A DNA stretch of 64,000 nucleotides. Source: Neoechinorhynchus agilis (lineage: Eukaryota; Animalia; Acanthocephala). The notes beneath the pieces were generated by a model. It searched no databases, had not been told where the DNA came from, and saw only the letters and a program-made list of their open reading frames with translations. The position numbers were made by a program, and so were the translations under genes. The stretch spans positions 16,160,784-16,224,783 of the forward strand of contig CM121341.1 in assembly GCA_051530055.1 (NCBI GenBank). The letters are read 5' to 3'. The first letter of the stretch is position 1, and the number at the start of each line of letters is the position of its first letter. Of the stretch, positions 9,599-47,044 are shown in pieces.

Positions 9599-9779
9599 AC
9601 TTGTGGTGAAGATAATCCCGCTTACAAATCATTTTATTGTACTGAAATATTTCGGAGGAAACCTCGCCATATGAATCATTGCTTGTAAGTTTTTTCAACT
9701 GTGATGGCGAGGTTTCCTCTTCCGAAATATTTCACTACATCAAAATGATTTATAACCGGGATTATCTTCACTACAAGTT
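9599..9779. repeat. Hairpin element with ~72-bp inverted arms and a 33-nt spacer; related to the PLE 3' end at 36193-36270
   Basis: 9599-9670 is the reverse complement of 9704-9779 with few mismatches. The arm GAAATATTTCA..AAAATG..TAACCGG..ATTAT..TCAC matches 36219-36270. Confidence 0.75.
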
Positions 9780-10349
9780 AAAATCTACCGTCTCGATGTA
9801 TTTTCTCGATATGACTGAGCTTAATATTCGATCAACAAACGGTGATTTTAAACCACAGACGAAATCTTCAGTACTTCGCAAAACCAGAGTATTGTTTGTT
9901 AAATCTTCCCAGTATTTTCGACTATTAGCTGCGTTGGCAGGTTCTTCTGTGTTTTTCCTCACCCGGCGATCGAGTTAAAATTAAATTTAAAAACGTTTGC
10001 TATAGAGACAAAAATGACGTCATAACGATTTTTTAATTTAAAGCAATTCTTTCTGAGCTGAGAAGACCAGCGACAAAAGTTCTAACACTACAAATATCTT
10101 GATGCTTGGATCTAAAACGTACTTTGTATTACGGGTACCGTTTGTTTTTGAGTATTTTCCGTAAGATGTTCTTGGTTTTTTGTACCATGTGTTTGGGATA
10201 TTAGAGAACGTTGCTTTGGTATTTTGTAGCTGCTTTCTTTTGAATTGATATTTTACATAAATTTTGAGCATTAGACACGGAGATTTTTAGACTTGTTCAA
10301 CGATCTCAAATCTTTAAATTTTATACAGTTTGTAATTTATAAAAGTTCC

Positions 10350-13300
10350 GATGTGAACGAAGGAGCATCTTTACCCTCCATTGCCTCAAGGATGCATCCA
10401 GCATTCAATTTCTGAATCGTCGATTCTATGATATAAATAGTTTGCTGCATGAGGTGATGTTGCGACCAACCATTTTACAACGTGCCTGGTCCGACGGAAT
10501 AAATTGTATCAATGGCGAGAGGTTGGAAAATGTAAAACGACGGATCGAGGAATTTGCATTTCTCCTTTTTTCGGTGCCTAAACTGCGAGGGATGATTTGG
10601 TCTTCGATATCGTCTTCGAACAGGCGAAATCCCAAGGAGACGGTTTCTTTCCCAAACCGACTGGCTAGAGGCAAGATGGAATGTCTGTCATCGACGGGAT
10701 TGGTAAAGCTATAAGAAAACCAACGGACCATTTGTTGCGGCCGCGAGTAGGCGTGCTCGTTCTTTGGGGACGGCACAACAACCAAGGAGGTTTTATAGAA
10801 AAGATGGAATCTTTGATTTAGTTGGGTACTTTCGTCAGGAACGCGCATTAAAAACTTATACCTTCTAAATATCGATTTATTTTTCAGAAATGAAATCATA
10901 TGATAGAAACGAATACCTAATAAAGCGAATTCTAAATCCTAGCGACTTTTACGTGGTTCGAAAAGACCTAATCGATTACTCAGTCGAGCCGGACTGCTGT
11001 ACAAATATAATCGATCATGCCGTTCTACCAATTGGTGCAATCGTTGGTTGCTCCATGAGTGATGGCAGAGTGAAACGAGCTCGTGTTATTGGTGTAATTG
11101 GCGAGGAATCTCCACAAATAAGTTTGGAATTGGCAGATACAAGCGAAATGATTGGTGTTATCGATATAAATCGAATATCACGAATTCCGGTATCTGAAAA
11201 GAAAAATCTTGGTGCTACTCACGTATCTTTGCATGGAATAAAACCACTGTCAATGAAAATGGATAATCTTACAGTAAAAGTGGAATTAAAAGAATCCCAT
11301 GAATGGTCCTTGATTGCAATTCGAGCTTTTCGAAGTCTCATTGAAGAGTCCTGCGAGGTCAAAGTTGCATTCGTTGGACTTCACAAAGTACGACTTACGA
11401 TTGTAAGGGATTACGGTAGAAGAATAGACGTTGCTGAGTATTTGTGTGAGAGAAAATTCGCAGTCAAGACTGAAACAGAACACGTTGATTTGAATGTTAT
11501 CGAAGATGAAGGTTATGGAAATCCAAGTGGCGAGGATGACATCGATAACAGAAAAGTGCTTAATTTTAGATTGAATGAGTACGTTAAAATTGTTGACATT
11601 ACGGATAATTTAAGCGTAGATGAGTTGGAAGCAGCACGACCGAGTGGACGTCGATTTCACCTCGACGTTTCAATTGCTTCAAAGGCATACCTACTGCGAC
11701 CACCACAACAATCAGCTGTTCTCACTCGAATGGGACTTCTTCTAATGCGTGGTTTTAGTAATCTTCACGTTATCCATCGCAATGTACACGATTTCTTCAT
11801 TGAATCTACAAAATTCGCGTTAAGTGTAGGAAAATCTTGTTTTGTATGTTCATCTGTTGATCAATGTACAATTCTAAATGATTGGCTGAGAAATAAGTTT
11901 GAGTTCAGGCACCGGTGTTTTGTCGTTAATAGTCAAACAGTCCTAAAAGCACACGAACGTTCTCTTAAAAGTGGATCGTTTAATTTGCTAATCGCCGTAC
12001 CAACAGTTGTAGCCGAATGCGTCAAACAGTGGGAAATAATATTTCGAACGCTAATCATAATTGACACTAATTGTCTCATTGATGAATACAAATCTTCTGC
12101 TGATCAAATGTTCAGATATATTGGTCACATGGACTGTGTAGCCAATGATTTGTTTCGTGATGCAACTCCTGACGATAAGACTACAACGATTATCGTGCAT
12201 TCCAGGGAGTATTATGAGGCCCATGAGAGACAAATTTATCAGTGGTTGTTTCCTAGTCAATTGAAGACCCTTAAAATGAGAAATCGTTCAATAAGTGACA
12301 AGCAGTTACAAATAAAAGGACCAATGCTAACTTTGTTTGGATCAGCAATGAGTGCTGAGTTGCGAAGTCAACGAATGGCAATTATACCTCATTTTATTCA
12401 ATCCATAGATCGCTTAGAAGAACTTAAAATTCTTTTGGGTGCAGCTATTGCCGATCCTCGAAGTGGAATACTGGTTGTGTGCACATCTTTAAGCTCAAAG
12501 ATATTAGTAACAAACGCTATTAGAAAGGAGTTTGGCGTGCTCATAGGAATCGCTGTTTACGGCAAGAGTTTTTGAGTTGATGGGATTAGAGATTTTTAGA
12601 TTTTACTACATTGAAAATTGCATAGCTATAATTACTCGAAATTTAATACTTTCTATATTCAAAAACTCTCGGTTTACTTCGTTGATGAAATTCTCGACAT
12701 CAACCAAGCTCATCGTTCATGGATAATCTATGATCGACCAACCAATCAATCATTTGGTTCTCATTTTGACACAATTATTATGCTGGCAAATGCGTTTCAT
12801 CCATTTCGCATCACATTTCTCCTTGATACTCGAAGGGAGTCTTATGGTAAGGACGAATTAACTGTTGATTCTCTCATCAAAGGCTCACATATCGAGTGGC
12901 CCAGAATGGATTTTAAGGAGTATGAAACTCGGTACATATGCCGTCACATCGCCTTCTTCGGTGAATGCATGAGCAAAACTCGTTGTCGTAATCTTGTCCC
13001 GATGCTGGGCAAATGTGAATTGGTTGACATTTGGCCAAAAGAGGGCACACGAGAGATGAAGATAAAGGTAAAATCAGTTATAAGTCCTAATCTTGTATAC
13101 GGTTTCCCTGTAGATGGATTCGAGCCCGTTGAAGCACCGTCGATGGATGTGGATCTTCAGTTAGCAATGACGAATCCACAAGTTGCCCGCATAACACAGG
13201 CTAACACATGTCTCTACGCTTATCGTGACAACGTTCGTGCTTGGAAACGCGTCAATCTTTTATCTGAAGATGGCCTTTTGGTATTATTGATTGACTCGGG

Positions 13301-18337: not shown

Positions 18338-20675
18338 TTATTTTTTCATTACCAGTCGTGGATGTAATCCTAGATAATTACACGGTACCAAGCCTCGGTC
18401 GCCATCGCCATTTTCAACCAACCACCACATATTCACTTTTGCTAAACTCTTCTTTTCGCCTTCACCAGACAAACTGTCAGCCTCTTCGATTTCAGCAACG
18501 TACTCTTGATCAAAATCACTCCTTTCTATAACCTTCAAGCGATCGCCTTGCCTAAGCCGCAGTTCATCCGACTGATTTGGATCATAGTCGTACACCGCAT
18601 AAACATATCCGCCATTAGCCTGTCTTCCCATTTTTGCCATCGTGTCCGTCAAAAATGAAACACACTCTTCATAATCATTCTCGCCTGGCTCACATTTATC
18701 AATTGGCATTTCGTCGTCACCGTATTAGTCTGTTGGATTTTTACGAAGATACGAAATTTTATATTTTTCCACTTTAAATTTCAAAACGCAGATTCGAAAC
18801 GCTTATGTACTTTTTCAAAAGCCATGCTAAGCCTTTTAAAAGCGCTCTTAAAAAGGATACATTTTGTCGGTAACCAAAAAACCGATACAAAATTCGTTCG
18901 AAAAATCCTTATCCGACAGACTTTCCAATACGTTTGTGCAAAAACGCAACCGCCAAACTCAACGAGTATTCGCGCGATCTCAACATTGTTGCATGATGCA
19001 GCACAATGAAGTGGTGTCCATCCGTCATGATCTGGATAATTAATATCCGTTCCGTACTTGACCAGAAATCTTGCAACGTCGACATTTCCGGTACATACGG
19101 CATTGTGAAGAGCGGTTATGCCTTCTTCATTAGGTCGTCCAGCATTATCCATTTTCAGAGCAGTCTCGATCACAAGTTGAAGATCTCCCTCTGCGGCTGC
19201 GTCCAATAAGATATCCATAGGGCGAAATGTAACCTTTTTTCCTTCTCTCTTGTTGCTCGCATCGTCACGATCGGCACTAACAGACGAACTCAAAATCGTA
19301 GTACCAACAGCGTTCCCATCCGTACATTTACCAGGAATGATGGTTTGATTATCGTCATCATCGGTTCCATTCATGAATGACGTCCTAGTTATGAATTCCT
19401 CAAGTGAGTGATCATTAGAACTCGAGAGAGTGTCATCTTCATGACGACAACTGCTGTCTACTGAAACTGGAGTTCCGTCATCCTGGTTGTCTTCCTCGTG
19501 AACTTGGAGAGAAGTTCGCGATGCATCAGTGCGTATGAGGATTCCATTAGATAAACCCATAAGGAAACCCTCAAGTGCATACGAACATCAACTCCGTCCA
19601 AGAACGAGTTTCTTCTTTTTACACTATTCACTACATTCGACTGAACCTTTTCCACGTCAATATGGAGACGGCCGTAGTTGCCAGCGTTGCTCAAATCTTG
19701 TTCTTCTTCTGTGCTCTTGTAACGAGCGTTTTCACTGAGATCAAACAATTCTCGATTTACTCGGACGAGTTCATGTTGGCGCTGTACTAAAGCCTGACGT
19801 TGCTCAAGAATCCGAGCACTTTGCTGCTCGTTCAGTCTGTTTCGAATTATAAGTTCCTGTTTGAGTTTGTCGATTTCCGCCTTGTCAAGGTTTCTGGATT
19901 GGGTGTCTGAACGCGCGGGGAAATCCTGAGACGGCGATGACATTTTGAATTTGGCGTTGCTCGCCAACATTGAGTATAGTTCATGTTCCTTCTCGGCACA
20001 GAATTGGCGGACAGCGTCGAGGTCACTTATTGGCTTGTAACCTGTCAACAATGAAACCAGATCAGCATGGAATCACGAATAAAGGTAAAAACAACATGGA
20101 ATGACGTCACTTTTCTACATTCAAGACAGGGATTGCTTTTGTCGTAGACAAGATATCTGTTTGAACATTGAACTATTCATGCTTGTTTATGGCGTAAAAA
20201 TTTAATGAATTCATCAAATCCGATATTTCGGTACAATATCGCTTCTTTATCCAAGTTGTTTGCCGTGCCGAAATATCCGATTTTTTAGATTCCTTCAATT
20301 TTTAAGCAATAAACAAGCAATAATCATTGTAAATAAGCGCAGTAAATTTGAAAGAATCCGATTTAGAAAAATGCACATTTTGCGCAATATTTTTGTTGAA
20401 AATTGCGCTCATTACTTACTCGCCCTGGTGGCCTTATGTTGGTCGATTATCCTTTTCAACGTTTGTAGCTTGCGTACTATCGTATCATCATGTCCGATGC
20501 TGCTGACCGGCGTTGTCGAAGTGATGGCAGCTTTACTCAATTGGTGCCGTAAGAGACGTAATCTTTGTTCTTTTGCTAACAAGATTTGTTCATTGGTGTT
20601 TATTTGCATTTGTTGTCTGTTTATCATTTCTTGCAGTTCCGCTATACTCAGATCCACTTGTTGATGCATTTTCAT
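18338..20675 (-). CDS. ASPP: ASPP-family protein (coiled coil, ankyrin repeats, SH3), about 4 exons
   Basis: N-terminal DLSIAELQEMINRQQMQI...KEQRLRLL, ankyrin segment LLDAAAEGD..EGITALHNAVC..DHDGWTPLHCAASCNN, and SH3 VYAVYDYD..DELRL..WW..GLVPCNYLGLHPR. Confidence 0.9.
20216..20286. repeat. Degenerate small inverted repeat of the 43215-43362 PLE-end family, inside an ASPP intron
   Basis: CCGATATTTCGGTAC and GTGCCGAAATATCCG form an inverted pair matching the helix II-GAAATATC part at 43271-43285. Confidence 0.5.
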
Positions 20676-20877
20676 CTGAAAGTAGTATCATTCTCTTCAG
20701 ACACATGAGCGCGAACGAATCAAGTCCTCCTCGAGACGATCTACAATGGCGCGCTTATAAATTCATGTTTCAAAATGTAAGTTTTCGCCTCTTCAGGAAT
20801 GTCACGTTCTTTCGTATCCAGTGCGCGTTTTTAGACATTTTAAAAAAAGTGATGTCATTTTTTACATTTAGTTACTA

Positions 20878-23800
20878 GTGAAGGACGACGTTCGATTCCA
20901 AAGGTTCTGTAATGCAATCGACAGCTTTAGAAGGCTTACGCAAGTGGAGAAATCCATACGAGAATATAATGAATGTTTTATAAAAGCTCTCAAACGTTGC
21001 ACGTTTTTGGTGGAATTCGAGTCGGCCATGGCGTTGCAACTAGTCAGTATCCTTTCAAGCGTTAAGGGATACCGAGAAATGGCTAGACACGTGATGGAGA
21101 CTATGCGATGTGTCCTAAAGAGAACTACACTTCCAAATAATGAAATTCGCCACCTAGTCGTGGAAGTTCTGGACGACGTTTTCGCATGCAAGGAAGAGCA
21201 GAGAAGTCAAAATGATGATGAATTGAAGAACTCACATGTTGCCCAAAACACAAAATTGTCAGTTTTTGAGCTAGCTAGAGCCGGTAAAGTAACAGAGGTA
21301 CCACCGTGTAATGTAGATCCATGTCCACACGTGGTCCTACCCGAACAGCAGCAGCGTAGGTTGGTACTTTGACTCCTCCAATGGTCGGCGAGGGGTTATC
21401 GTTGAAAACTTAGCAATTCTGGCTACTTTAAACGAACTTCCTAATGAAATCAATTGATTTATGCACATTTTACCTAGAATTCTCGATCATTAGAAACCAA
21501 ATTCGCCTTTTTCCTCCAAAAAGAGTGTTTGTTAAATCAACTCGGCAAAATCACCTTTATCTGCCAGTTTCTATGAATTCTTAATTCGATTAATCACCAT
21601 TTACAAACCTCACATGAACCTGTTCATTCGCTACCACCTATCGGATACGCGTTGCAAGCTACCATCCTTCCGAATATTCAAAATCTTTCAAAAGCTGTTC
21701 TACTTCAATTAATGTTGATTAGATAACAATCGTTTTTAAAAAATTTGCATTACAGTTTGTGTCGCTACTTTTTCCCTTTTGATGGCAATTCGGAGTCAAG
21801 TATCCGCTTGTTAAACGATTAAACCGAAGCGGTTCGTACCACGACGTTCATCCTTGTAATGAACGTGGATCCGTACATTGCCCACAATCTGAGATACCAA
21901 TTTTATCAAGTATAAACCACGATCTCGTTGGGTATTCACATGAGCCATGGACTAGTGCACAACCCAAACACAGTAAAGTACGAGCTAATACGGAGAAGCG
22001 AAGCGCTATGGACTCATTTTATGAGAATGCATTAACAGCAATTGAATCTTCGATACTTTCGCTGAAATACTTCAAAGCTTACCTAGCATGGTTCATCAAG
22101 CGATTTGAGAATCTTGAAGAATCTACAGCCGCTGATTTTATTCTCAGAAACGATCCATTCACATGCCGACAGTACGGTCATCTTCACCGAAAAGCATTGT
22201 TCAGTGTGTACGGAGCCAAATATTACCTGTCAATGAAAAAGGCACTATTACAAAACCCCCGAAAGGCAACTGTAATTATCATGAATCGCCTTGAAGAGCG
22301 AATTATGGAGTGGTCGAAAACGCTATCATTGTACAAGGCGGAATGGGTTAATCGGTCAAAGGATATTCTGGATAGAAGCGATCCAACGGAAAATGCGATA
22401 TGGGATACGCCAATAATAAAATACCTTAGTATACACAGCGTGAATACTAAACGAAGCCGGATCGATATGCTATTAAGATTGGAGAAGGAAGACGATGTGC
22501 TGGCAATCGAGTTACCCGCTAACGACTCTGGGGAAGGCGGTGTACAATTCTGTGGTCTTGCATTAATCGTTGACATACGGAGAACCTGTAGTCTTCTACT
22601 TTCAGAGCAATGGCATTTTGTGTTCTGTCTCTCCAGACATGATACATTCTTACTATATTCTATTTCCTCTTTAATAGCGTGATATCCATGCTCTTATGAG
22701 AGCAAAACCAGCCGGGTCAATCTTGTCCAAAATGTAGTCTTATTGTGCGATTTATCCATGTTTAGTCTGGTTTTTATCACATTTTTGTTATATCGTATTA
22801 CGTTAGTTGCTTCAAATTGTATGATTTAGAAAGATATGGCTATTAATTTTTGGGTTTGTTCGAAAAGGCCTTGCTTCAAATGTACAAGAGACTGTGTTTT
22901 ATTTTTAAGATTGCTTGAAAATCTTAAGGTCATGATTAAGCCAGCAATCCTTTAAATACTCGCAAAGATAAAAATAGGACGTCGCTTTTGTTGTTTTTAA
23001 TATAGGGGCTTCGAAATTGTATCAGAGAAGCATTCAAAAAACTGATACCCTTTTCTAGTTTTTATAGTAGCTCGATTGTTTAAACGTCGAAATGTGGCTC
23101 TCATAATATTTACTTTAGTGATAGGTGTTTAAAATTTATTTTCAAGTTGAGCGTTTGGTGCAACCAAAGAAATGATTGTCAAGATTGCATTAATTTTAGA
23201 TGCATAAATCTATGAAATCTTCTGTAGGATATGCATTAATCGAATATCTCGAAAACAGTAGCTTCATAAATTCAAAACTATTTTCAAATTATTTCTTTCA
23301 ACTTACGGAACTCCCTGTTTCTATCGACACTTCAAAACAATTTCTTCAAATTTGTAAGGGGGTTGGTGTTTTTAAAGGCGTTTGAACGGCCGTAAATAAG
23401 CGTACATAATCGATGATCATCGAGAACTCAGAATTAATTTCAATGATCGGCAATGCGATTATTAAATACATAAACGACGACGATGCCTACCTTATGGTTT
23501 TCGAATTTATACCTTACATCTTCTTAAACCGATCAGAATTGACTATACAAACTATGCTCCCGGTCTATCGCTTTGTCTATACATATAGCGTTTTACTGAG
23601 ATACTTTATGCCGATCGTCGATAAAGAACGCTTCGATGTCATCGAAAAACTCATTGCATATTCACGAGAACTATCGATCAAACCAGCCGATAAGAAGAAT
23701 CAAATTTTAAAAACCCGTATACTCGAATTCGAATTTCTCAATCGATATGGTGCGAAATCCACACGGTGTATAAAACACCTCGTGGAGATAGTTTCTAATC

Positions 23801-25250: not shown

Positions 25251-25376
25251 GTGCGTGTTTTGCTTATAATGCATAAATGTCTCTAATGAAGACACTTGTG
25301 TTCATGAGTGCAATTCCGAATGCGCTGCTCTGTGCTTACGTACGCAAACCCGTCAAATTGTATCTAACAAAACCCC

Positions 25377-25620
25377 ACGACCATGAATACGATTTATTGC
25401 CTGTGTACGTTTGTGCAATTCTGCATGTTTTGTTCCGTGTTTAGGTACGCAAATTCTTGAAGCATTAAATAATTTATTCTTAACAACAAAGTATCAAAGA
25501 ATACAAAACGAGCTTATGAGCGAATGCGCACTTAGGTCACGCAAAAACGTGACAGTGTAAAGAAACAAACTGACCGAACCCGAATTCGAACCAATCCCTA
25601 CGACCATGAATACGATTTAT
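25377..25620. repeat. 21-bp direct repeat ACGACCATGAATACGATTTAT, copies 223 bp apart
   Basis: Identical copies at 25377-25397 and 25600-25620. Confidence 0.8.
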
Positions 25621-26280: not shown

Positions 26281-26284
26281 TCAC

Positions 26285-27448: not shown

Positions 27449-27781
27449 GGATAGCTCAAATTGAAAAGATATTTCATCATTGTTTTATTCGAGTGGAGAA
27501 AGTAATTAAATTTAATTAAAAATTAAATATTTCGATCCTCTATCTCGGATCTTCTTCAGTATCTGAAAAACACAAACAGGGATTGTCATTCACTTAGTGT
27601 CTAATAATATCCGGCGGAAGTCTCAATCTCAGCTTGAAATCCGACTTGTTGCCATTGAACGTTTCGAAAGCATCTATGTAGAGGGCTTCCACGAGGATAT
27701 TATTAGACACTAAGTGATTGACAATCCCTGTTTGTGTTTTTCAGATACTGAAGAAGATCCGAGATAGAGGATAGCTCAAAT
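27449..27781 (-). mobile_element. 5'-truncated Penelope-like insertion with inverted 3' end, minimal hammerhead and 13-bp TSD
   Basis: 78-bp inverted arms at 27535-27612 and 27695-27772. The minus-strand spacer encodes LVEALYIDAFETFNGNKSDFKLRLRLPPDIIRH*, homologous to the C-terminus of the 40657-41979 PLE ORF. TSD GGATAGCTCAAAT at 27449-27461 and 27769-27781. Confidence 0.85.
27522..27562 (-). ncRNA. Minimal type I hammerhead ribozyme motif
   Basis: CUGAAGA-A-GAUCC-gagauaga-GGAUC-GAA-AUAU-U: catalytic core, 5-bp helix II, palindromic helix III; helix I is only about 2 bp. Confidence 0.65.
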
Positions 27782-30846: not shown

Positions 30847-31099
30847 ATTAAGTATTTCTGTAAAGATATTCTCCATTATAGTTTGTTTCAATAGCGAAGA
30901 TTGTATCACTTAAATTTATTGAAAATTTTCGGCCTTTTCGTTGGCCTTCTTCAGTCACTTGTTTCGCAAGTTTTTCACGACGCTGAAGTGAAAAACTTGC
31001 GAAACAAGTGACTGAAGAAGGCCAACGAAAAGCCCGAAAATTTTCATATAATACATTTAATTGATACAATCTTCGCTATTGAAACAAATTAAGTATTTC
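30847..31099 (-). mobile_element. Miniature PLE-end hairpin (~97-bp arms, 9-nt loop) with a hammerhead motif in both arms and a 12-bp TSD
   Basis: 30882-30978 is the reverse complement of 30988-31088 with one divergent patch. Direct repeat ATTAAGTATTTC at 30847-30858 and 31088-31099. Confidence 0.85.
30920..30957 (-). ncRNA. Minimal hammerhead ribozyme motif
   Basis: UGA-CUGAAGA-A-GGCC-aacgaaaa-GGCC-GAA-AAUU-U-UCA: 3-bp helix I, 4-bp helix II, palindromic helix III, then AAUAAA. Confidence 0.7.
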
Positions 31100-32130
31100 A
31101 TAACGAAAAGTTCTAAAGCAACAAAAAACTAAATGACAACACGAAAAATAACAACAAAATTATCAACTTGTACAGCTAATATCTAGTGTGAGAGATAACA
31201 CATTAAAAAAACGATATAAAAACCAAATAGCCAGTAACAATAAAGACGTAAACGAATAGTAAAACATTTGACCACAATAAACTACGGTTTTTTAAACAAA
31301 AAGAAGAATTACAATTTCCGAACGGAAAACGAAAGAAACGAACGCGGAAGAATAAATAAATTAGTGCGCGCATTTGCTTGAAAGGATACATTTCCGATAA
31401 CCCGTATGCGTGGTCGTCCGGTCTTATTCGAGTTCCTGGATCCTAAAATGTGTTTCTATTTTATGTCACGTGTATGCGAAAATAAAGGGGGTTGCGTTTT
31501 CGTATGCTCCTTTTTATGAATTGATGCTTTTAATATGATAATGAATTACTATGCGCTTCAAGCAATTGCGAAGGTATACACAAAACAAAACATCCAGAAT
31601 AATCCAAACGTTCATAATCGATAAATCGTATTTATCATCGTAAGGTTCTGTTTAAAATACTGTTCCGCAAGTTTTCTACTTAATTTCACGTGTATGCGAA
31701 AATTAAGGCGCCTGCCTTTTCACATGCTCGTTTTTATGATTTGATGCTTTGCTAGTAATAATGAATTATCGTGCGCTTCAAGGAATTGCGTAGGAATGCA
31801 CAAAACAAAACATGCAGAATAACCCAAGCGTTCACAATCGATAAATCGTGTTTATCATCGTAAGTTTCTGTTTAAAATACTGTTCCGCAAGTTTTCTACT
31901 CATTTTCACATGTATGCGAAAATTAAGGCGTCTGCCTTTTCACATGCTGGTTTTTATGATTTGATGCTTTGCTAGTAATAATGAATTATCGTGCGCTTCA
32001 AGGAATTGCGTAGGAATGCACAAAACAAAACATGCAGAATAACCCAAGCGTTCACAATCGATAAATCGTGTTTATTATCGTAGGATTTAGTTTTAAAAGT
32101 GCTCAATACTTCATGCGGTTTTCGACGTTG

Positions 32131-33501: not shown

Positions 33502-33524
33502 ACCTTATCATTCACAGAAAATGC

Positions 33525-34271
33525 TTGAACCTGCTAGTTCAAGTAGAGCGACAACGGTCTCTCTTCCACCTAACGGGCCATGATGTCTTAATATGGTCAA
33601 TCGGCTCCAACAATACACTTAGGAGAGTCCTTCATTTGTCTCCTCTGAACATCGCTCTGTTCAGATCGGTTAATTACTCACTTCTCTCTCATCGCTCTGT
33701 TTTAGACAACAATCTAAATTACGCCCTCAGTCATATTAACAGTATTATCAATACCACAGCTTATCTGTTTCTCTACCAGCCACAAAGAGTTTTTCCTAGG
33801 CCTTATGACAGCAAATCTTTTCGATTTATTGGGCGTCAATTATATCAAGCCAAAATTCGTAGAGATGCTTTTCTTGTCAAAATGCGCTCTAGACATTATT
33901 GGGCTGCCCGACGTCGACAACAATTGGCATCCGACCGCGCTGTCCTAAAGTCTTTACAACCATTCTCCTCGATGTGGTGGAATACGGTTTCTAGGAAGAA
34001 GTTTATCAGTTGGAGATCGAGGCTCACCTCCTGGTTGAAAACATCATCTATGGATCATATACTCTCGTCTATCTTTGATTTTCATGCCTCCTCTTCCTCT
34101 AAAAACATCACACCGCCAGTCATTTTTAGGAGACTAATTCGTAATCGATCTGATTTAAATCAATCTCATATTGCCAAAATTTTTCCCTATATCCAAAATT
34201 GTCCTCATCCAACAGCACCTCATGGACCAAATGCAACTCTCTGCTTTCTCGGGATTGCGTCCTCCTTATAG
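33525..34271 (+). CDS. Unknown ~248-aa ORF downstream of the gag-like ORF; no RT or APE motifs
   Basis: Open frame of 747 nt starting 24 nt after the ORF1 stop. The nearest ATG (33521) is in another frame. Weak SGNH-like 'VLIWSIGSNN'. Confidence 0.4.
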   Translation: MNLLVQVERQRSLFHLTGHDVLIWSIGSNNTLRRVLHLSPLNIALFRSVNYSLLSHRSVLDNNLNYALSHINSIINTTAYLFLYQPQRVFPRPYDSKSFRFIGRQLYQAKIRRDAFLVKMRSRHYWAARRRQQLASDRAVLKSLQPFSSMWWNTVSRKKFISWRSRLTSWLKTSSMDHILSSIFDFHASSSSKNITPPVIFRRLIRNRSDLNQSHIAKIFPYIQNCPHPTAPHGPNATLCFLGIASSL

Positions 34272-35479
34272 CGAGTCTGATGTTGAAGTGCTCCCCTTCT
34301 GCCTGGAGAGATATCAACATTTCGAGGCGCATATTCTTGGTTAAAAATAGGAGAAAGTTAGTTCACAATCGATAAATCGTATTTATTATCCTAAGGTTCT
34401 GTTTTAAAAGACTCTTCCGCAAGTTTTCTACTTAATTTCACGTGTATGCGAAAATTAAGGCGCCTGCGTTTTCGTTGTCCGATTCCTCGACCTCCATGCG
34501 ATAGTCATCGTTGTAGTCCGCTATATCGTTAAGCTTCTTAATTTTCGTGTCCCGTGTCTTCCTTTGTGGACCTTTTTGAAGAACACGTTTCTTGGATTTT
34601 TTTAGATTTGGGCTCCCTGAGCAAGAAGGCCAGGAAGCTTGAACATATTGTTAAAGAGCGTGCAAATCTTCCTCTCGAAGGTTGCGGTCGCCTGAGAGAA
34701 ACGAGCTTGCATGGTAGCCAGTTGTTTGTTACATGTCTCGTCCAATCGTTTTCATGATAATCAACAGTTACCGCTTGTGATGAGGTTGAGGGCTCATATG
34801 AAACCTGTACGGATGCTAGGGAATGTCCAATCACGACTTTGTTGACAGGATCAACTACCATTAGCCCGCTCGTAAACCCTGCACTGTACGGTGTGTCCTC
34901 TTGATTTTTACTACGTCACTAGCAGGTAGTTTTACGCTGAAACTCGCTTTATTGCCTGCCATTGTATTGGCCACAGAGATATGTGCAAGACCGCAAGAAC
35001 AAGACGCCTTCGAGGATTCGGCTTTTTCTCTATAAATTCGGTGCCTTCAAAATCTATGCGGTTCGCAGATTAGTTATCAAAACGTCGACAGCTTTGTTTA
35101 TGTTGGTTGACTCTCTTCGGAATGCTCTGCATTGTTTTATCGATGTATACCTTGTCACATCGCCAACGACGCACAACCAAAGGGAACGAAATACCGCTGA
35201 GGGTAGGAAACTCACTTATGATTCCCGCCTCCTGGAGGTATCTGAGGATCCGGAGGAATGTATAAACTCATAACCGTATGGTTCGGGGTATAGAGTGATT
35301 TAATTACTCTGAGCCAGATCCGTGGGCTGTGTGCCCAAGGAAAATTATCAGCCATGGAAAAAGGCCGCACATTGATACTTAATAAAAGTTACCGGCTGGC
35401 CAGTCTTCAAAAGCTGTATTTTATACACCCCACAACGAGTCGGATCATTGTGAAACCTTCTTGAACGTGTTAGCGAGGG

Positions 35480-36050: not shown

Positions 36051-36192
36051 AGAAAGTGGACTACCACTCCCGCATGTAGATGTCAGCTGAGGTCGGAGCT
36101 AATGGTGATTTTCGAATTACAAAATGTACTATCGAGATAAAATCTTTCAGGATGATAGAGTTGTAGTTATGGTAGATAAATTAATAAGGCAA

Positions 36193-36229
36193 TGACTGAT
36201 GAAGCTAGGCATCCTCGCGAAATATTTCA
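36193..36229 (+). ncRNA. Minimal hammerhead ribozyme motif with canonical CUGAUGA core, inverted relative to the adjacent PLE remnant
   Basis: UGA-CUGAUGA-A-GC(U)AGG-cau-CCU(C)GC-GAA-AUAU-U-UCA, followed by AAUAAA. Confidence 0.72.
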
Positions 36230-37776
36230 AATCAATAAAATGTGTTTTAACCGGAGAATTATGATCACCAGAACTACGACAAAATGTATAAATGTTGGGA
36301 ATGATTCTGTCATCCGGAGATTGAGTTTTAGTTTTTGATAAGTACGAATATCGAGCATTGTAGTTCAACATTGAATCTGTTCGCGGTTCTTCGTTCAAAT
36401 TTCGTAAACTTTTTCATTGCAAGACGGCTGACCTTAGAGAAACAACGTATTAGCAAAGTAAAGTGTTGGCCAAACCGATAAAAATAATCATTGCTTATAA
36501 GCTTAGAAGCATTTGAAAGTGGATGTTATCATGCGTTCAGTGTGTGGTTTTTGATGTTTTAAAACAACAATGCCCAAACAACTGCCCGCGGAGCTGTTTC
36601 ATTTAGGCCGCTCTTATTCTGATCTCCAAAACAACAAATTAATGTTACAAAATTAAATTTACTTTTAAGGGGTCCACCCATGTGCCGTCTTTCACTAAGC
36701 ACCTCGAATGCAGACGCCGCCGTTCCGGGACTTCACATTAATAAAAGCATCAAATTCTGAATGCAAAATCTTGGTTTATCATTTCTTGGATTTTCGGCGT
36801 CATAAAAGGACGATTTTGATTTCCAAATATTTGCGTCAAAAATTTCTATGTTTTAGTACCCGTGAGATTAATCTAAATGTCCAGAACGGTCCCCATACAA
36901 GAAAATGTCGACCACCGCTATTCTAAGAAATTCATTCATGCTTTTACGTCAACTATGACCGTATTTTCTGTTAAGACAATTTAATGTCATTAAATTCATT
37001 CTCTCTAATTAAACGTAGCGACGACCTCAGAATATAAAAATATATAATCGCTTCTGAAGAATAACCGAAAATATCATTAGAAACAAACGGATTTATTTCT
37101 TAGGTAACGCTATCTGAAAAAATAAAGAAGGACGTGCCAATGATAACTGAGGCAAGTTGAAGCCCTGTTTCTCAAAAATATTTATACTGGAAACGCAGAT
37201 AGATTTTTCATTAAACTTATTAACGCGATTGTCTCCTTGTTATGAGACAAAAACAAGTGAACTTCTTACTCGGCAATAAGCACTGTCCCACTAAAGTTAT
37301 AATCAACTGCGAGTTTGAGGAGAAGCATTAAAACGCCAAGGGGTTCAAAACTAAGCCACAGGAAGGCTTTTGAATATCAATTTTATGTACAGTTCACATT
37401 TCACATCTAAAAGATAAATAAATGGTACGATATTTTTACTGCTTAACTGAAAACTTTTCAGCGTTATTCGACTTGTGCCTAAATATGAATTTTATTTTCT
37501 AATAAGATTAAATCATGATATTCGATTGAGCGTAAGGCCGATCTAAAAAATTAGCATCCTTTCCTCACTTGCATATCAGCTGTTAAATGCTTTGCGTTAC
37601 AAATCCATCAATCGCACATCAACATCTCCTCATTACCCACAAACGAAAAGACACAACTCGCATTTCTTCGTGCTCCCGTGTTCAGAAAATGGCATCAAAA
37701 TGCTCGCAGCTCCAGACGAACAAAAATACGAAAAATGGATACTTTCCTCTGTGTGGAAGCGGGGTAACTTGGATTT

Positions 37777-37889: not shown

Positions 37890-39020
37890 ATGGCAGAGGA
37901 CGAGGTCGCAGCAGTCGTGATCGATAATGGATCGGGTATGTGCAAGGCCGGATTCGCCGGGGACGATGCTCCTCGTGTCGTATTTCCGTCGATCGTTGGA
38001 CGGCCCAAATACCAGGCAGTGATGGTCGGAATGGGACAAAAGGACTCTTATGTTGGAGATGAAGCTCAGAGCAAGAGAGGAATATTGACTCTAAAGTATC
38101 CAGTTGAGCATGGCATCATTACAAACTGGGATGATATGGAGAAAGTGTGGCATCATACGTTTTACAATGAACTCCGAGTTGCTCCAGAAGAGCATCCTAC
38201 TCTTCAGACCGAGTCTCCGTTGAACCCAAAAGTGAACAGAGAAAAGATGACTCAAATCATGTTCGAAACTTTCAATTCACCAGCCATGTACGTGGCCATT
38301 CAGGCCGTCCTTTCTTTATACGCCTCAGGGCGAACAACCGGAGTTGTTCTAGACTCTGGGGACGGTGTAACTCATACAGTTCCTATCTACGAAGGATACG
38401 CCCTTCCCCATGCCATTCTCCGTCTGGACGTCGCTGGACGGGAATTGACCGAGTACATGATGAAAATCATGATGGAACACGGTTATGCCTTTGTCTCATC
38501 GGCAGAACGGGAAATCGTGAGAGATATCAAGGAGAAACTGTGTTATGTGGCGCTGGACTTTGAGCAAGAATTGGCTATTGCCGCAAGTTCATCCTCGATT
38601 GAAAAGAGTTACGAGCTTCCTGATGGTCAAGTGATCAGCATTGGAAACGAGAGATTCCGCTGCCCTGAAGCATTGTTCCAACCCTCGTTTGTAGGAATGG
38701 AAATCCTTGGAGTTCATGAAACCACTTTTAACTCAATAATGCGCTGTGATATTGATATCCGCAAAGATCTTTATGCTAATACCGTCCTTTCGGGAGGGAG
38801 TAGCATGTACCCGGGTATTGCTGATCGAATGCAAAAGGAAATGACTGCTCTTGCGCCAAGCACAATCAAAATTAAGATCATCGCCCCACCTGAACGTAAA
38901 TACTCTGTATGGATCGGTGGATCTATTCTCGCATCATTATCAACGTTCCAATCAATGTGGATTTCAAAGGAGGAATACGACGAAAGCGGACCTTCGATTG
39001 TCCACAGAAAGTGTTTCTAA
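37890..39020 (+). CDS. ACT: Actin, intronless, divergent paralogue
   Basis: Complete 376-aa actin ORF ([17 protein letters not shown]...IVHRKCF). Confidence 0.99.
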
Positions 39021-40000: not shown

Positions 40001-42110
40001 CCTATAAAATATGATAAAATATAGTGAAGAAAATAGGAACTGAGAAATTCAATTTTATTGTGAATTTTCGGCCTTAGCGTAGGCCTTCTTCAGACTATCT
40101 AAAATGTATCAGTCGCAAATCCTATGTCCTTTTGGAACGATATCTGGCGGAACGCGTAGGTGGAGTGTGTAATCGCCCTTGTTGTGCATTGAAGTTCCAT
40201 ATATTAACGAGAATTGGAACTGTAATATTGAAACCTTGGTCAAACGACTCGATGGGAAGAAGGAGTGTGTTCTATATTGCAAGAAGGGACAGACAATGTA
40301 CAGCGTGTCGCAAACTAAAAGAACAGTTGAGGGTGCAACAGAGTGTGTTTATAAAATCCCCTGCACGAATTGTGATCAATCGTATGTAGGACAGACGAAC
40401 AATCTCAAGAGGCGTTTAGTTGAACATAGGAGGGCTGTCTCCAAACAAATGGATACGAAGTCCGCGATTGTACATCATACGATTGAGAGTGATACGAGTC
40501 CGTATTTAGCTGCTCTTTCAACTTCGGGTGCTTCTGGTCCATTTGCAGTCACCATTGAAAGTGAGACCTATCGTAGCTGCACATTAATCCTATAATTACA
40601 AATTATCGCAACTGACCGCAGGGTTTCCTAAAACATGCCTACCGGAGTCAAACAACGTGGTCATATCAGGAGTAGATTTTATCAATCGGCTAAACAGGAA
40701 GTCAATTTATGATTCGTGCATTATGATCTCAGCGGATGTAGTAACCCTCTTCACAAGAATACCAGTGGAAGATGCCATTGAACTTGCTATCCCACTACTA
40801 ATGGAGAGTAGCAGTCAATGGAATCTGTCAGCTGCCAACTGGCGCAAGTTACTTCTCTTTTGTACGAAATTCTCTAATTTCGAATTTGAAGGACAGAACT
40901 TCGATCAGGTTGATGGCCTAGCAATGGGAAGTCCACTTTCTCCGGTCCTAGCTGAGCTGTATATGAGACACTGGGAAGACTCTAATCTATCTAAACTGAC
41001 AGGGATACAATTTTGGTGTCGTTATGTGGATGACACCTTTATCATATTAGACCAAAACGAATGCACCGTTACTCGACTACAACAGGAGCTAAATGAAAGA
41101 GATCCCAACATACAATGGACATGTGAAAGGGAGGATTGTGGAGTTTTACCATTTTTGGATGTGAAAGTTAGTAGGAACCAGGATTGTACATTCTCAACTT
41201 CGGTCTACATCAAACATGGTGTGTCATCTCAAATAGTACCTTGGGTTTCAGCTCAGCCGCGTAAATATAAGATATCGAGAGTTCGATCACTGGTTAACCG
41301 AGCATACAGATATTGCTCGAATGCGTATTACCTAAATGATGAACTAGATCGATTATGGAATGTGTTCAAAAAAGCAGGCTATCCAAGAAAACTATTATTA
41401 TGGACATGGGAAAATGTCCAGCAAACTATCCGACGGCCACCCACAAAAGATCGGGATATCGTTCCTTCAACGAATGCAGACACCCGATATATTGAAGTTC
41501 CATATATTAACGAGAATTGGAACTGTAATATTGAAACCTTGGTCAAACGACTCGATGGGAAGAAGGAGTGTGTTCTATATTGCAAGAAGGGACAGACAAT
41601 GTACAGCGTGTCGCAACCTAAAAGAACAGTTGAGGGTGCAACAGAGTGTGTTTATAAAATCCTCTGCAGGGATTGTGATCAATCGTATGTAGGACAGACG
41701 AACAATCTCAAGAGGCGTCTAGTTGAACACCGGAGGGCTGTCTCCAAACAAATGGATACGAAGTCCGCGATTGTACATCATACGATTGAGAGTGGACACC
41801 AAATCGATTTTGGAGCAACTGAGGTTCTCGCAGAGTGTAGAAACCGACGGGATAGAACGACGATGGAGGCGATGTTTATCCAAACAGTGCGTACATTTAC
41901 GCACAACAAGGGCGATTACACACTCCACCTACGCGTTCCGCCAGATATCGTTCCAAAAGGACATAGGATTTGCGACTGATACATTTTAGATAGTCTGAAG
42001 GCCTACGCTAAGGCCGAAAATTCGCAATAAAATTGAATTTCTCAGTTTCTATTTTCTTCACTATATTTTATCAGCGATGTTAAATATATATTCGATACCT
42101 ATAAAATATG
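40001..42110 (+). mobile_element. Penelope-like element (RT + C-terminal GIY-YIG), 5'-truncated, with an inverted 3' end, a duplicated endonuclease segment and a 13-bp TSD
   Basis: ORF 40657-41979 has GLAMGSPLS, RYVDD, FLDV and CVYKILCRDCDQSYVGQT..RLVEH. 40012-40187 is the reverse complement of 41901-42073, and 40188-40490 directly repeats ~41491-41793. TSD CCTATAAAATATG at 40001-40013 and 42098-42110. Confidence 0.93.
40057..40098 (-). ncRNA. Minimal hammerhead ribozyme motif, intact in the inverted arm; the sense copy at ~41990-42025 has lost 3 nt of the core
   Basis: AUAGU-CUGAAGA-A-GGCCU-acgcua-AGGCC-GAA-AAUU-C-ACAAU: UUC cleavage triplet, then AAUAAA. Confidence 0.78.
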
Positions 42111-42347: not shown

Positions 42348-43913
42348 TTAGAACTCATCGTCACTTTCGACGAAACAGGGTGGTTGTTCATTCTTGTCAA
42401 ACGGTAAAGGCACTCTACCAATTGGTACGACGTCGTCCATTTCTTTGAAAGCATCAGCTTGAATAGTCTCTTCTTTCAATAATTTCCCTTCCCATTTTAT
42501 GATATTTTTTGGCCCGCAATACGATTCTATTTTATCCATACGACGTACTACTACATCGTTACGACACTTATTCTTTTCACAGTGAGGCAAGATAGTTCAA
42601 AGGGAGCAATTTTTGTAGAGCACCAAGATGTTGTACATAGTCATATTTATTTAAAGATTAGAAATTTTGGTGAGGCTTTTAATTTCAAAAGTATTTAGCC
42701 CAGATTCTTACGATATTTTTATGTAATAAATTTTTTTTAACTGTTGTATACATCCCTTCCACGGCTGATAATTTTCTTTGAGCAGTGATGCAATCACTTC
42801 CCTGGCCCAGATAGGCAATATGTGTGCCAAAGGAAAATTATCAGCCTGAATAGAAATGTTCACAAGACTTTAAAAAGTTGTAAAGAGGTTGTTCATGGTG
42901 ATATAGAGATGGATTTATTATTTCCCTTTCACAATATTTTGTCCGACTCGTCGGACTTCTTCAAGTTTAAATGGTAGACCAGGGTGGCTTTATTCTGAGT
43001 TTTAGCCTAGAATAAAGCCATCCTGACCCGACGAGACGGACGAAATATTGTAAAAGTGAAATAATAAATAAATCTCTATATCACCAAACTAAAAAAGTAT
43101 TAAAAATATCCATTAGATTCGTAAAAAGGAATTGTACAGAAAATGAGCAATGCATGAGTGCTGCAAGGTAAGGTGCCGGGAGCTGCGAGTCTTTGATATG
43201 AGTCAATTTCGAATGGAAATGAAAATGGTTGTTTTCTGGCGGAGAAATTAAAATGATTTTATTTTAAAATCCGATATTTCGGCACACTCTTGTGCCTTTA
43301 TCAAGGTTGTTTTGCAAGTGTGACCAAAAAACATTTTAATTTCTCCGCGTGGATATGAAAATCTCGAAGCATTATCTGCGGCTAAAATTCTCCACAATAC
43401 GATAATAAAAGGTACCTAAAAACTTAAACGCTCAAAGACAAAAGTTCACTTTTAGGTCATGGGTATAAAAGGAGTTCAAGGAATAAATGTCTGACTTTCA
43501 TTGGCTAATTGAACACAATAACAGTATCGGAAAATTGGCGACAAAGTGTCAAGTTCGCGTTCTGTGAGAGAATATGCTATTCCGATAAAATTACATTGCA
43601 GACATTGAATCCGTTTGCAGACTTGAACAAGACCACTCTCTTCAATTATCTGTTCGATTTCATCAACAACACAAAACTTCACTTTGTCCAACGCGTCGCT
43701 TTCGTTAATGTTTAATCCGGATCTTATTGAAGGCGTTACAACGCCGATCAATGATTTTTGACGATCTGTGATGAGTTCGAAAATCCAATCTTTAATATTG
43801 TGAGTCCATGTGACCGAAGGAACTTCTTCCGACAATTCAAAATGTATTAGCAAAGATTGTTGTTTCGTTGAGGACGAAAGTGTCCGTCGAACGGCAGGAG
43901 ATAAAATGACCAT
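42348..43913 (-). CDS. Degenerate DEAD-box (eIF4A/DDX-like) helicase gene or pseudogene; exon structure uncertain
   Basis: VILSP (motif Ia-like), VVTPS (Ib-like), LDKVKFCVVDEIEQII (II-like), YVQHLG (VI-like, ~42630-42650) and a C-terminal exon MDKIESYCG at 42348-42590. Confidence 0.4.
42763..43086. repeat. Two adjacent palindromic hairpins (42763-42846 and 42896-43086), MITE-like; partial copy at ~35325-35450
   Basis: GGCTGATAATTTTCTTTG/CAAAGGAAAATTATCAGCC arms, and TGGTGATATAGAGAT...ATCTCTATATCACCA arms with an inner GGCTTTATTCT/AGAATAAAGCC stem. TGTGCC(C/A)AAGGAAAATTATCAGCC and ACGAGTCGGA recur near 35330-35435. Confidence 0.75.
43215..43362 (-). mobile_element. Miniature PLE-end element with 17-bp terminal inverted repeats, a U3-A8 hammerhead variant (43271-43306) and a probable 12-bp TSD
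   Basis: GCGGAGAAATTAAAATG/CATTTTAATTTCTCCGC. Minus strand CC-UUGAUAA-A-GGCAC-aagagu-GUGCC-GAA-AUAU-C-GG. Flanks GGAAATGAAAAT (43215) and GGATATGAAAAT (43351) match at 11 of 12 positions. Confidence 0.68.
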
Positions 43914-46064: not shown

Positions 46065-46177
46065 ATTGTTGTTTAGGTCGCTTGTCGACACCCGAGAGAT
46101 ATCATTAAAGACGAATATATTTCGATTTTTTTCACAGAGTTGAATCTCGGGTGTCGACAAGCGACCTAAACAACAAT
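46065..46177. mobile_element. MITE-like element with 33-bp perfect terminal inverted repeats
   Basis: ATTGTTGTTTAGGTCGCTTGTCGACACCCGAGA at 46065-46097 and its reverse complement at 46145-46177. No clear TSD. Confidence 0.7.
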
Positions 46178-46694
46178 GTATCTAACTACCCGAATGTAAT
46201 CCTCAATAAAATGTTCTGTTATCATCGACACAAAGTCGGAATGTAGGGTTGAAAATTAAGTCTTGCCATTCGGAACGGCATGCGCTGGGATTATCACATG
46301 TGAGGCAAACAGCGGTTACTCTGGTCTAGGTATTTGGTAAATTCAACCCTTCGGGAGATTCTCCTTGTACATTTCTGCATTCGGAATTTTTCCTTGCCGA
46401 TCACATAGTCAGATGATAAAATTTACGAATCTTATAGATATAAGATACGTATATCTTGTTTATTGTGCTGGGTAATTTCTTAGACACAACAACGCTCTTT
46501 TCTCATCTGCCCGTATTTGCGTTGCTTTTCAATTAATTAACATCAATGTTATTGTTAATTAGCATTTACATGTGACGGTTAAGACGAGGTTGAATATCAA
46601 ATTCCATAACGTTTTTTTTATGGCGAAGAAATTTTTTTTTTATAACTTTGATTATCGAATATTTTATAAATAAAAGCACGCACACTATAAATTC

Positions 46695-46821
46695 TATGAA
46701 TGAACATAGTTTCGTTTTCTTCAAATGTTATGTTTGTTCGGCAGCTTCCTTGATGGCCGCGGCATTGCCGCGTTGGATCGCCGCGTTGATTCGCTGCAAC
46801 AGGAAGCTGCTGGATCGCATA
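46695..46821 (-). mobile_element. 127-bp 3' fragment of the same CRE family as 5600-7310
   Basis: Matches 5606-5732 with 2 mismatches; encodes FLLQRISAAIQRGNAAAIKEA. Confidence 0.9.
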
Positions 46822-46932
46822 ATAAAATTTAATTAAATCGTTACCCGGACGCTGACCGCGTTTCCTCGTTGGATTGCGAGGCTTATTCTTTGGATCAGGA
46901 AAATCCTCTCGCGTCGCTCCCCTGTTTGTGCT

Positions 46933-47044
46933 GCGAAATTAAAATGATTTTATTTTAAATCCGATTTTCGGCACAATCTTGTGCCTCTATCAAGGTTGCT
47001 AACTCGGATATTTAAAAACTTACAAGCAACCTTAATAAAGATAC
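46933..47044. repeat. Second, degraded copy of the 43215-43362 PLE-end family; its partial inverted arm abuts the CRE 5' end
   Basis: GAAATTAAAATGATTT...CCGAT.TTCGGCAC...GTGCCT.TATCAAGGTTG is shared with 43244-43309; inverted AAGGTTGCT/AGCAACCTT. Confidence 0.75.

Follow-up and report, generated by a model that had tools for sequence, protein, structure and literature searches.

Truncated Penelope-like element insertions with inverted, hammerhead-bearing 3' ends in the genome of the acanthocephalan Neoechinorhynchus agilis

Introduction

Canonical endonuclease-bearing (EN+) Penelope-like elements (PLEs), among them Penelope/Poseidon, Neptune, Pen of Adineta vaga and the PLEs of Pomphorhynchus laevis, leave insertions that are heavily truncated at the 5' end and partially duplicated in tandem, with an inverted 5'-truncated copy upstream, a tail at one end, a target-site duplication (TSD) and a hammerhead in the terminal repeat (PMC8557442, PMC3846280). 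In P. laevis, an acanthocephalan, PLEs are abundant, accounting for 8.9% of the genome (PMC8557442; see also PMC7943196). Here we analyzed a window of 64,000 nucleotides (nt) from another acanthocephalan, Neoechinorhynchus agilis (assembly GCA_051530055.1, 19.4-Mb chromosome CM121341.1, ~16.16-16.22 Mb), in which a graded series of loci, from a 2.1-kb coding copy to small hairpins, carries PLE-like 3' ends. These loci are likely to be insertions of at least five endonuclease-bearing PLE families, the hairpins being by-products of integration and not working ribozymes.

The hammerheads of PLEs have been described as minimal type-I motifs with a short helix I, a long bulged helix II, a tiny palindromic helix III that implies dimer action, and a U3-A8 covariant (Cervera & de la Pena 2014, PMC4209133). 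The same work ascribed pairs of such motifs, ~100-700 bp apart on opposite strands, to truncated PLEs. Metazoan non-LTR (non-long terminal repeat) retrozymes are likewise short and non-coding, related to the PLE pseudo-LTR (pLTR) and provided with type-I hammerheads; they consist of direct tandem monomers with intact hammerheads and give rise to circular RNAs (Cervera & de la Pena 2020, PMC7229834; Li et al. 2026). As for the mechanism of insertion, the Anolis Poseidon protein cleaves and extends both target strands in vitro, and the tail corresponds to the segment between two start sites of reverse transcription (Frangieh et al. 2024, PMC11167929).

Sequences analyzed

The window was compared with ten other 21-kb stretches of the same assembly (L003-L012), which were reached via conserved or multi-copy proteins. 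Genome-scale counts cover the 276 kb made up by the window and these stretches, with 1-3 independent copies per family. Environmental rotifer contigs (L013-L092) served as metagenome loci.

Results

Nine loci share one 3' module

All eight loci listed in a first-pass annotation of the window are present, each with a PLE 3' module, and a ninth hairpin of the same kind, absent from that list, lies at 42896-43086 (Table 1). The module common to the nine is a minimal type-I hammerhead followed by a 3' region of ~45-50 nt. Flanking sequence sorts the loci into five families, where four to five had been estimated: A (9599 and 36193), B (20216, 43215 and 46933), C (30847 and 40001), D (27449) and E (42896), whose flanks are mutually unrelated. 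Most 3' ends had been described as duplicated in inverted orientation, and seven of the eight listed loci do have an upstream, outward-facing partner; the copy at 36193 is solo. The size series proposed in that annotation was also recovered, and runs from a 2.1-kb copy with reverse transcriptase (RT) and GIY-YIG endonuclease sequence at 40001, through a 0.3-kb copy keeping the endonuclease C-terminus at 27449, to the small hairpins. In the whole sample ~16 of ~24 independent hammerhead loci have a partner, always upstream and facing outward, and ~14 of the paired loci are hairpins of 120-310 bp. The two arms often differ in length: the partner at 43215 measures 17 nt, that at 27449 is devoid of the distal half of the ribozyme, the right arm at 20180-20319 begins within stem II, and at 46933 the inverted repeat is a short central palindrome only. 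Two arrays of an outward-facing PLE hairpin plus spacer were found in L006, at 6962-8561 (325-bp period, five units, cores without G12) and at 20553-21131 (248 bp, more than two units).

The shared motif is a predicted minimal type-I hammerhead

Read in the sense direction, an arm comprises [C/U]UGAN[G/A]A, one bulged base, a stem of 5-6 bp, GAAA, a 2-nt palindromic loop (UA or AU), U and H. Helix I has 2-4 bp, helix II has 5-6 bp after the bulged base, and helix III is a single pair with the 2-nt palindromic loop, because of which any activity would require a dimer; the AUAU/AAUU palindrome of helix III, readable from the sequence, would permit dimerization. An Rfam search of the window returned no hammerhead family at gathering score or at E<=10, as expected given that minimal variants needed a descriptor of their own in earlier work (PMC4209133), and at E<=10 the hairpins draw sub-threshold microRNA (miRNA)-like matches only. 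A strict hammerhead descriptor gave 4 matches against 1.0 +/- 0.9 expected, a result that is suggestive and, taken alone, not significant.

The assignment to minimal type-I hammerheads, already made in the first-pass annotation, is backed by covariation of helices I and II and of a core pair. Across families 88-90% of cells are paired against 27-43% in controls with slid partners, counts that are biased by the fact that the aligned sequences were chosen and trimmed by hand. The first alignment, of 12 sequences from seven families with loops excised and the register kept constant, had 90.5% of cells paired as compared with 29-39% after sliding. Compensatory changes are present in 24-31 cells (24 in the first alignment), and the observed score was reached in 0/500 shuffles. 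The core pair C3-G8 is swapped for U3-A8 in family B. In a second alignment, which adds helix I and the A15.1-U16.1 pair, pairs 1.1-2.1 and 1.2-2.2 of helix I are formed in 10/10 sequences, with 3-4 pair types each.

A covariance model derived from the aligned sequences produced 27 matches at E<0.1 in 212 kb, a density of about one per 8 kb, and further matches in an additional 64 kb of N. agilis; independent new copies lie at L008:13090, L003:7102, L007:13396/13455, L012:1835 and L011:1392. Together with the slid controls, these new matches argue against an alignment artefact. The model recovers the listed loci at E 5e-7 to 0.015, with a weak match at 20216 (E 2.7) and none at 9599, which is too decayed. 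Inactivating core changes occur at several copies: a 3-nt deletion at 41992, G12 to A at 42896, and position 8 or 9 in B copies. On this comparative evidence the motif is a minimal type-I hammerhead, that is, a predicted ribozyme. Nearly every family also carries an AATAAA-like box 6-15 nt past the predicted cleavage site (36233-36240, 42011-42017, 43254-43262(-)), which could be a polyadenylation signal or else, paired with the upstream T-tract, the distal strand of a longer helix I.

The arms are PLE termini

GIY-YIG coding sequence directly adjoins the arms of families C, C1, D and B', which bears out the proposal that the arms are PLE termini, and in L005 a family-A hammerhead lies ~55 nt downstream of a decayed GIY-YIG open reading frame (ORF). 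The ORF at 40657-41979 matches RVT_1 (E 1.6e-8) and GIY-YIG (E 1.2e-5), its GIY-YIG part also matching a solved endonuclease; it has no N-terminal RT motifs and ends 13 nt ahead of the hammerhead. The 82-nt spacer of the 27449 copy encodes a C-terminus ending in NGNKSDFKLRLRLPPDIIRH and a stop, which aligns with the ORF ends of 40001 and of an L003 copy. A GIY-YIG remnant also lies inside a family-B arm pair (L005:11352-11960), and the copy at L012:1835 comes after the end of an ORF with the motif PPDK. The closest database proteins to the 40657-41979 product, which are metagenomic, are merely 26-40% identical to it (~32%), and the N. agilis families are therefore new.

Two further copies deserve description. 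At L004:880-990 a family-A hammerhead without a helix I strand is fused to an RT segment with the YVDD motif (...MRYVDDTFIILDR...); this PLE copy has suffered an internal deletion or a rearrangement. The 5'-truncated family-C copy at L003:7594-8066 opens with a 202-nt inverted repeat (100% identity, 69-nt spacer) inside endonuclease coding sequence, which is an internal snap-back of apparently very recent origin, not a co-terminal partner. Other candidates for PLE coding sequence were rejected. An ORF at L005:1112 that starts from an ATG in a family-A helix I is a LINE (long interspersed nuclear element) RT fragment that by chance is in frame after the PLE end. The RT ORF at 47064-48971, considered as the body of the 46933 copy, is LINE-type, with R2 proteins as best matches and no similarity to PLE RT, and the reading frame at 6083-7345(-) is likewise LINE-type.

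Target-site duplications and one-sided tails

Flanking direct repeats score at least 10 at 11/16 inverted-pair loci, as against ~5% of random placements with the same geometry, a null whose scores are inflated by satellite DNA. Scoring loci outside the window include L003:6955, L006:18652, L007:13328, L008:13036 and L011:1335. Inside it, the TSDs at 27449, 30847 and 40001 measure 13, 12 and 13 bp, as had been reported; the one at 43215 has the single mismatch reported and a length of 13 bp instead of 12. The 9599 locus has a further TSD in addition to the earlier four, and at 20180-20319 and 42896-43086 a TSD was sought and no convincing one was found. The TSD-plus-tail layout is reproducible: in other parts of the genome, seven more loci show it. 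Outside the window, as over all loci, the TSDs measure 11-20 bp; the usual length is 12-13 bp.

At each of these loci the direct repeat abuts one arm, and the other arm is set off from it by a tail of 13-37 nt (73 nt at 27449). One-sided tails had been claimed for the window and are present at five of its loci, with lengths of ~29, 73, 20, 22-24 and 13 nt. The tail belongs to the element and is not filler. Three independent insertions of family B have (C/T)AGAAA(A/G)CAACC(A) at this distal end, and two have ...TTTC(T/C)CC(G/A)C at the tail-less, proximal terminus; the proximal terminus of family C is GGTGAAATT in both L008 and L003.

Predicted folding of the hairpins

The predicted RNA folds of 30860-31091 (-145 kcal/mol, z = -26) and 27462-27772 (-158 kcal/mol, z = -22) are near-perfect duplexes in which the hammerhead strands pair with their own antisense copies. 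According to these models, read-through transcription would leave the hammerhead trapped in a duplex of ~100 bp. Since the strands are paired to antisense and many cores are mutated, the hairpins are not plausible ribozymes. The suggestion that they are sources of double-stranded RNA (dsRNA) is plausible from the predicted folds; they are likely templates of long dsRNA, and hence possible triggers or targets of small-RNA silencing.

A leader box at the inner ends of three families

An identical 14-mer, AAAACTTACAAGCA, stands at the inner (5') arm ends of three unrelated families: A at 9680-9693(-), B at 47015-47028(+) and at L006:9087-9100(-) and 9110-9123(+), and C at L008:13137-13150(-), with variants at 30847, 43215, L007:13346 and L003:6965. 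The 11-mer ACTTACAAGCA has 4 copies in the 276 kb against 0.2 expected, all of them at arm starts of families A, B and C. The box is missing from the ORF-bearing relatives, and the homology to these ORF-side relatives starts right after a polypyrimidine-AG, at ...catatttttAG/ATGACTGATGA in family A and ...ttccttttaAG/TTGTAGATCTGA in family C (the slash marks the junction). A T-rich tract plus AG lies 3-12 nt ahead of helix I in 5/5 ORF-side families; in Drosophila virilis helix I directly adjoins the 3' end of an intron (PMC4209133). There is a likeness between the box and the core of the rotifer spliced leader (SL), CAACTTACCAAG / GGCTTATTACAACTTACCAAGAG (PMC3795323), and in bdelloid rotifers, which are close relatives, over half of messenger RNAs are trans-spliced (PMC1925144).

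Searches for a donor of the box were negative: the 276 kb hold no copy of it followed by GT and no SL RNA gene. A rotifer SL followed by a hammerhead was found 0 times in the metagenome contigs, including among 167 genomic SL copies, of which 163 are SL RNA genes and 4 are followed by non-intron sequence. A literature string search for the box returned unrelated primers only, and the P. laevis genome paper makes no mention of trans-splicing or PLEs. The rotifer contigs often contain the 23-nt SL exon in divergent pairs ~158 nt apart, each followed by GTAAAT (L016:2369-2549, L028:728-905), presumably head-to-head pairs of SL RNA genes. Retrocopies can record RNA splicing, and five intronless actin copies were considered as leader-carrying retrocopies and rejected as ordinary duplicates. 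A 220-bp satellite in the window (2.9 copies, 91% matches, 31453-32098 and 34361-34473, with a related stretch at 25366-25519) is split by a 2.25-kb element, and its units hold AAACTTGCGGAACA, which resembles the variant leader box of 30847.

Table 1. PLE-derived loci in the window. Coordinates are window positions; arms separated by a slash are the two halves of an inverted repeat.
Span	Strand	Family and type	Inverted arms	Hammerhead	TSD	Tail	Other features
9583..9825	(-)	A, decayed hairpin	9593-9659 / 9718-9784, 87% identity		ACT[A/G]AGCTTAAT, 9583-9594 and 9814-9825, 12 bp, 1 mismatch	9785-9813, ~29 nt	leader box AAAACTTACAAGCA at 9680-9693(-)
20180..20319	(-)	B-like, decayed hairpin	20180-20234 / 20265-20319, 82%				
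27449..27781	(-)	D, 0.3-kb copy	27535-27612 / 27695-27772, 99%; 78-nt partner without distal half of hammerhead	27523-27562(-), intact	GGATAGCTCAAAT, 27449-27461 = 27769-27781, 13 bp	27462-27534, 73 nt	endonuclease C-terminus remnant 27597-27695(-)
30847..31099	(-)	C2, mini-hairpin	30879-30978 / 30988-31091, 91-98%; loop 9 nt	30920-30957(-) and 31009-31046(+)	ATTAAGTATTTC, 30847-30858 = 31088-31099, 12 bp	30859-30878, 20 nt	variant leader AAACTTGCGAAACA on both arms
36178..36275	(+)	A, solo copy	no inverted partner	36193-36229(+)			decayed leader-like AATTAATAAGGCA, then ATGA
40001..42110	(+)	C1, 2.1-kb 5'-truncated PLE	40012-40187 / 41901-42073, 97%; inverted 3' end 40014-40187 (174 nt), sense 3' end 41901-42073	40059-40096(-), intact; 41992-42026, 3-nt core deletion	CCTATAAAATATG, 40001-40013 = 42098-42110, 13 bp, exact	42074-42097, 22-24 nt	partial tandem duplicate 40188-40491 = 41491-41794, 97.7%; ORF 40657-41979, RVT_1 + GIY-YIG
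42896..43086	(-)	E, hairpin	42896-42954 / 43028-43086	hammerhead-like, 42930-42967(-), U3 and G12-to-A changes			
43214..43362	(-)	B, copy	43333-43349 (17 nt) pairs with 43240-43256	43270-43307(-), U3-A8	TGGA[A/T]ATGAAAAT, 43214-43226 vs 43350-43362, 13 bp, 1 mismatch	43227-43239, 13 nt	
46935..47044	(-)	B, partial hairpin amid LINE fragments		46960-46996(-), A9 and helix III decayed			right arm opens with leader box AAAACTTACAAGCA at 47015-47028(+), stops ~47044 beside LINE sequence

Neighbouring repeats and genes

The unit at 32110-34363 (2.25 kb) has two ORFs (477 and 248 aa) without a Pfam match, sharp ends, and copies of 81-99% identity in L007, L008 and L009 that are hypothetical-protein paralogs in the NCBI annotation; the unit is apparently a mobile element, as yet unclassified. 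An empty-site approach through a supposed host gene at 32131-33501 was abandoned, as that segment is itself part of this dispersed repeat. LINE-type fragments with an R2-like RT and without GIY-YIG occupy 47064-50101(+) and 5481-7345(-). A 131-bp LINE 3' end at 46691-46821, equivalent to 5602-5732 (97.7%), adjoins the PLE locus at 46933, and immediately after the LINE ORFs comes a transfer RNA gene (50294-50366(-), 68.8 bits). The 113-bp near-perfect hairpin at 46065-46177 was rejected as a member of the PLE series, having no hammerhead match and its arms on the wrong side of a GAAA; it is unlike the PLE families, gives a sub-threshold match to a miRNA model and is possibly a miniature inverted-repeat transposable element (MITE). 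Five intronless actin genes (37890-39020 in the window and 10001-11131 in each of L003-L006) encode an identical protein of 376 aa. Their shared CArG-like and TATA promoter elements identify them as gene duplicates, not retrocopies, and L003-L005 are segmental duplicates on the same chromosome.

Discussion

Truncated integration and its alternatives

TSDs recur at other copies and the arms are PLE termini, so none of the outcomes that the first-pass annotation held to be incompatible with its reading was observed. That annotation left two possibilities for the small hairpins, abortive integration or a mobile non-autonomous class, and the evidence leans to independent truncated integrations, with the hairpin as a fixed mobile unit the less favoured, because breakpoints differ within one young subfamily. 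The L008 hairpin and a 0.6-kb L003 copy are 97-99% identical and have different breakpoints: in the former the second arm begins inside stem II, and the latter is endonuclease-bearing, with a 100%-identical internal snap-back. We consider it probable that all these loci are insertions of endonuclease-bearing PLEs whose hairpins are residues of the integration process. The GIY-YIG endonuclease would cut the target strands with a stagger, usually of 12-13 bp (11-20), giving the TSD. Both exposed DNA ends could then prime reverse transcription near the 3' end of the element RNA, each at one of two internal start sites, by analogy with the Anolis element. The observed layout has the extra tail on one arm only and the two copies head-to-head, facing outward. 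Synthesis of complementary DNA (cDNA) would mostly stop or switch template soon past the hammerhead, yielding hairpins of 120-310 bp, and would less often run on into endonuclease and RT coding sequence, yielding the graded series of sizes.

Several observations weigh against truncated integration. The steps are inferred from the anatomy of the insertions and from the behaviour of a vertebrate PLE in vitro, and no full-length element is present in the 276 kb. Tails are mostly 13-37 nt, with one of 73 nt, as against the published 30-40 nt, and the tail-less arm at 27449 begins inside the hammerhead, far from any stereotyped start site. Moreover, at least 10 of 13 hairpins have their inner arm ends within ~30 nt of the hammerhead, and the leader box is common to many of them, a clustering that random 5' truncation does not predict. 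This regularity is what would be expected if the mini-hairpins were a non-autonomous class, in which the hairpin or an RNA of ~110-130 nt (leader, hammerhead and 3' region) is transcribed as one piece, copied in trans by the PLE RT and amplified as a unit. The three B hairpins at 43215, 46933 and L006:9001-9209 are alike in centre and size, hairpins keep to a similar size range over at least eight unrelated families, the box AAAACTTACAAGCA recurs at arm starts in three families, and the repeated unit of the L006 arrays is the whole hairpin plus spacer (periods of 325 and 248 bp). PLE pLTRs on their own can mobilize foreign sequence in trans (PMC3846280), and retrozymes have been reported as non-autonomous PLE derivatives (bioRxiv 10.64898/2026.07.22.740005). 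Against amplification as a unit stand the different breakpoints of the nearly identical L008 and L003 copies, the arms that are unequal or begin inside stem II (20216, L008 and 43215), the presence of merely 1-3 independent copies per family in the sample, and the loss of G12 from the cores of the array units. We therefore judge a separate mobile class to be unlikely as the general explanation, and truncated integration and mobilized units may both occur.

Recombination offers another origin for the hairpins, as relics of an element of the form inverted pLTR followed by pLTR-ORF-pLTR from which the ORF was lost between direct pLTRs, in the manner of solo LTRs. The canonical structure does set an inverted pLTR beside a direct one (PMC3846280, PMC8557442), the arms are the non-coding terminal module, and TSDs and tails are preserved, as such a loss would leave them; however, the 276 kb contain no element with two direct pLTRs, the sole RT-bearing copy (40001) has no direct pLTR at its 5' side, ORF-side copies are without the leader box, and unequal arms or arms begun inside stem II fit poorly, which makes this origin very improbable. 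As for MITEs, understood as deletion derivatives of a DNA transposon with terminal inverted repeats (TIRs) and with a coincidental likeness to hammerheads, the size of 150-250 bp and the long inverted arms between direct repeats would suit them. Nevertheless, the arms are homologous to sequence directly 3' of RT/GIY-YIG ORFs and the hammerhead is backed by covariation; the homology to PLE ORF ends, as read from the sequences, effectively refutes this origin, to which we give almost no credence. The ends are asymmetric, with a one-sided tail, and TSD length varies over 11-20 bp, so that the name MITE is a misnomer here.

What the leader box may record

If the mini-copies were full-length cDNAs of a short spliced RNA, their stereotyped inner ends would be explained. 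We tentatively propose, while regarding it as rather less than an even prospect, that they are complete cDNAs of such an RNA, with the leader joined at the conserved polypyrimidine-AG acceptor just upstream of helix I; judging from the likeness to the rotifer leader, the template may have been trans-spliced. Alternatively, the box may be a cis-spliced 5' exon of the element or a shared cis-element of non-autonomous copies, and its loose similarity to the native acceptor regions makes a microhomology-guided template switch possible. Should the box be an acanthocephalan spliced leader, PLE transcripts in this lineage would be SL trans-spliced, and a short RNA of SL, hammerhead and 3' end would be the preferred template. 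This would explain why hairpins of unrelated families all end a few nt upstream of the ribozyme, and would provide a sequence-level explanation for the abundant tiny hammerhead pairs left unexplained in flatworm genomes. The genome would then keep a fossil record of trans-splicing in Acanthocephala, tying spliced-leader trans-splicing to retrotransposon expression and template choice.

Comparison with known systems

The insertions share with canonical EN+ PLEs every feature of the anatomy described above: 5' truncation, partial tandem duplication, upstream inverted copy, one-end tail, TSD and terminal hammerhead. They differ in that the protein is ~32% identical to its nearest database relatives, the tails are mostly 13-37 nt instead of the published 30-40 nt, the TSDs are 11-20 bp as compared with 8-10 bp in A. 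vaga, and mini-hairpins far outnumber ORF-bearing copies, with no full-length copy in the sample. In the twin priming that produces the 5' inversions of L1, both target DNA ends act as primers and give rise to inverted segments, the inverted part being an internal region of the RNA. In contrast, both arms of the N. agilis insertions begin at the same 3' terminus.

The hammerheads have the type-I topology, short helix I, long bulged helix II, tiny palindromic helix III and U3-A8 covariant of the minimal PLE motifs (PMC4209133), from which they differ as new sequence families of predicted ribozymes, several copies of which carry inactivating core changes. The likeness to non-LTR retrozymes extends to the tandem arrays in L006; however, the unit in N. 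agilis is an inverted pair instead of direct monomers with intact hammerheads, the window contains no direct tandem array of the retrozyme type, and the L006 array cores are without G12. The Anolis Poseidon reaction accounts for both the one-sided tail and the head-to-head arms, with the differences that it concerns a vertebrate element and that tail lengths are not the same (PMC11167929). Conversely, the N. agilis loci lend independent genomic support to two points established in vitro for a vertebrate PLE, the existence of two start sites of reverse transcription and the use of both target strands.

New PLE families, with the standard scars of their insertion, are described here from an acanthocephalan genome that was assembled recently. 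This is of use for annotation, since Rfam misses such hairpins and they are easily mistaken for MITEs or miRNA precursors. The leader box may be the sole feature that is new. The insertion anatomy itself is the published PLE signature and conceptually not new, and because it matches the described cases (PMC8557442, PMC3846280, PMC4209133, PMC11167929), what N. agilis adds is new families of a known kind.

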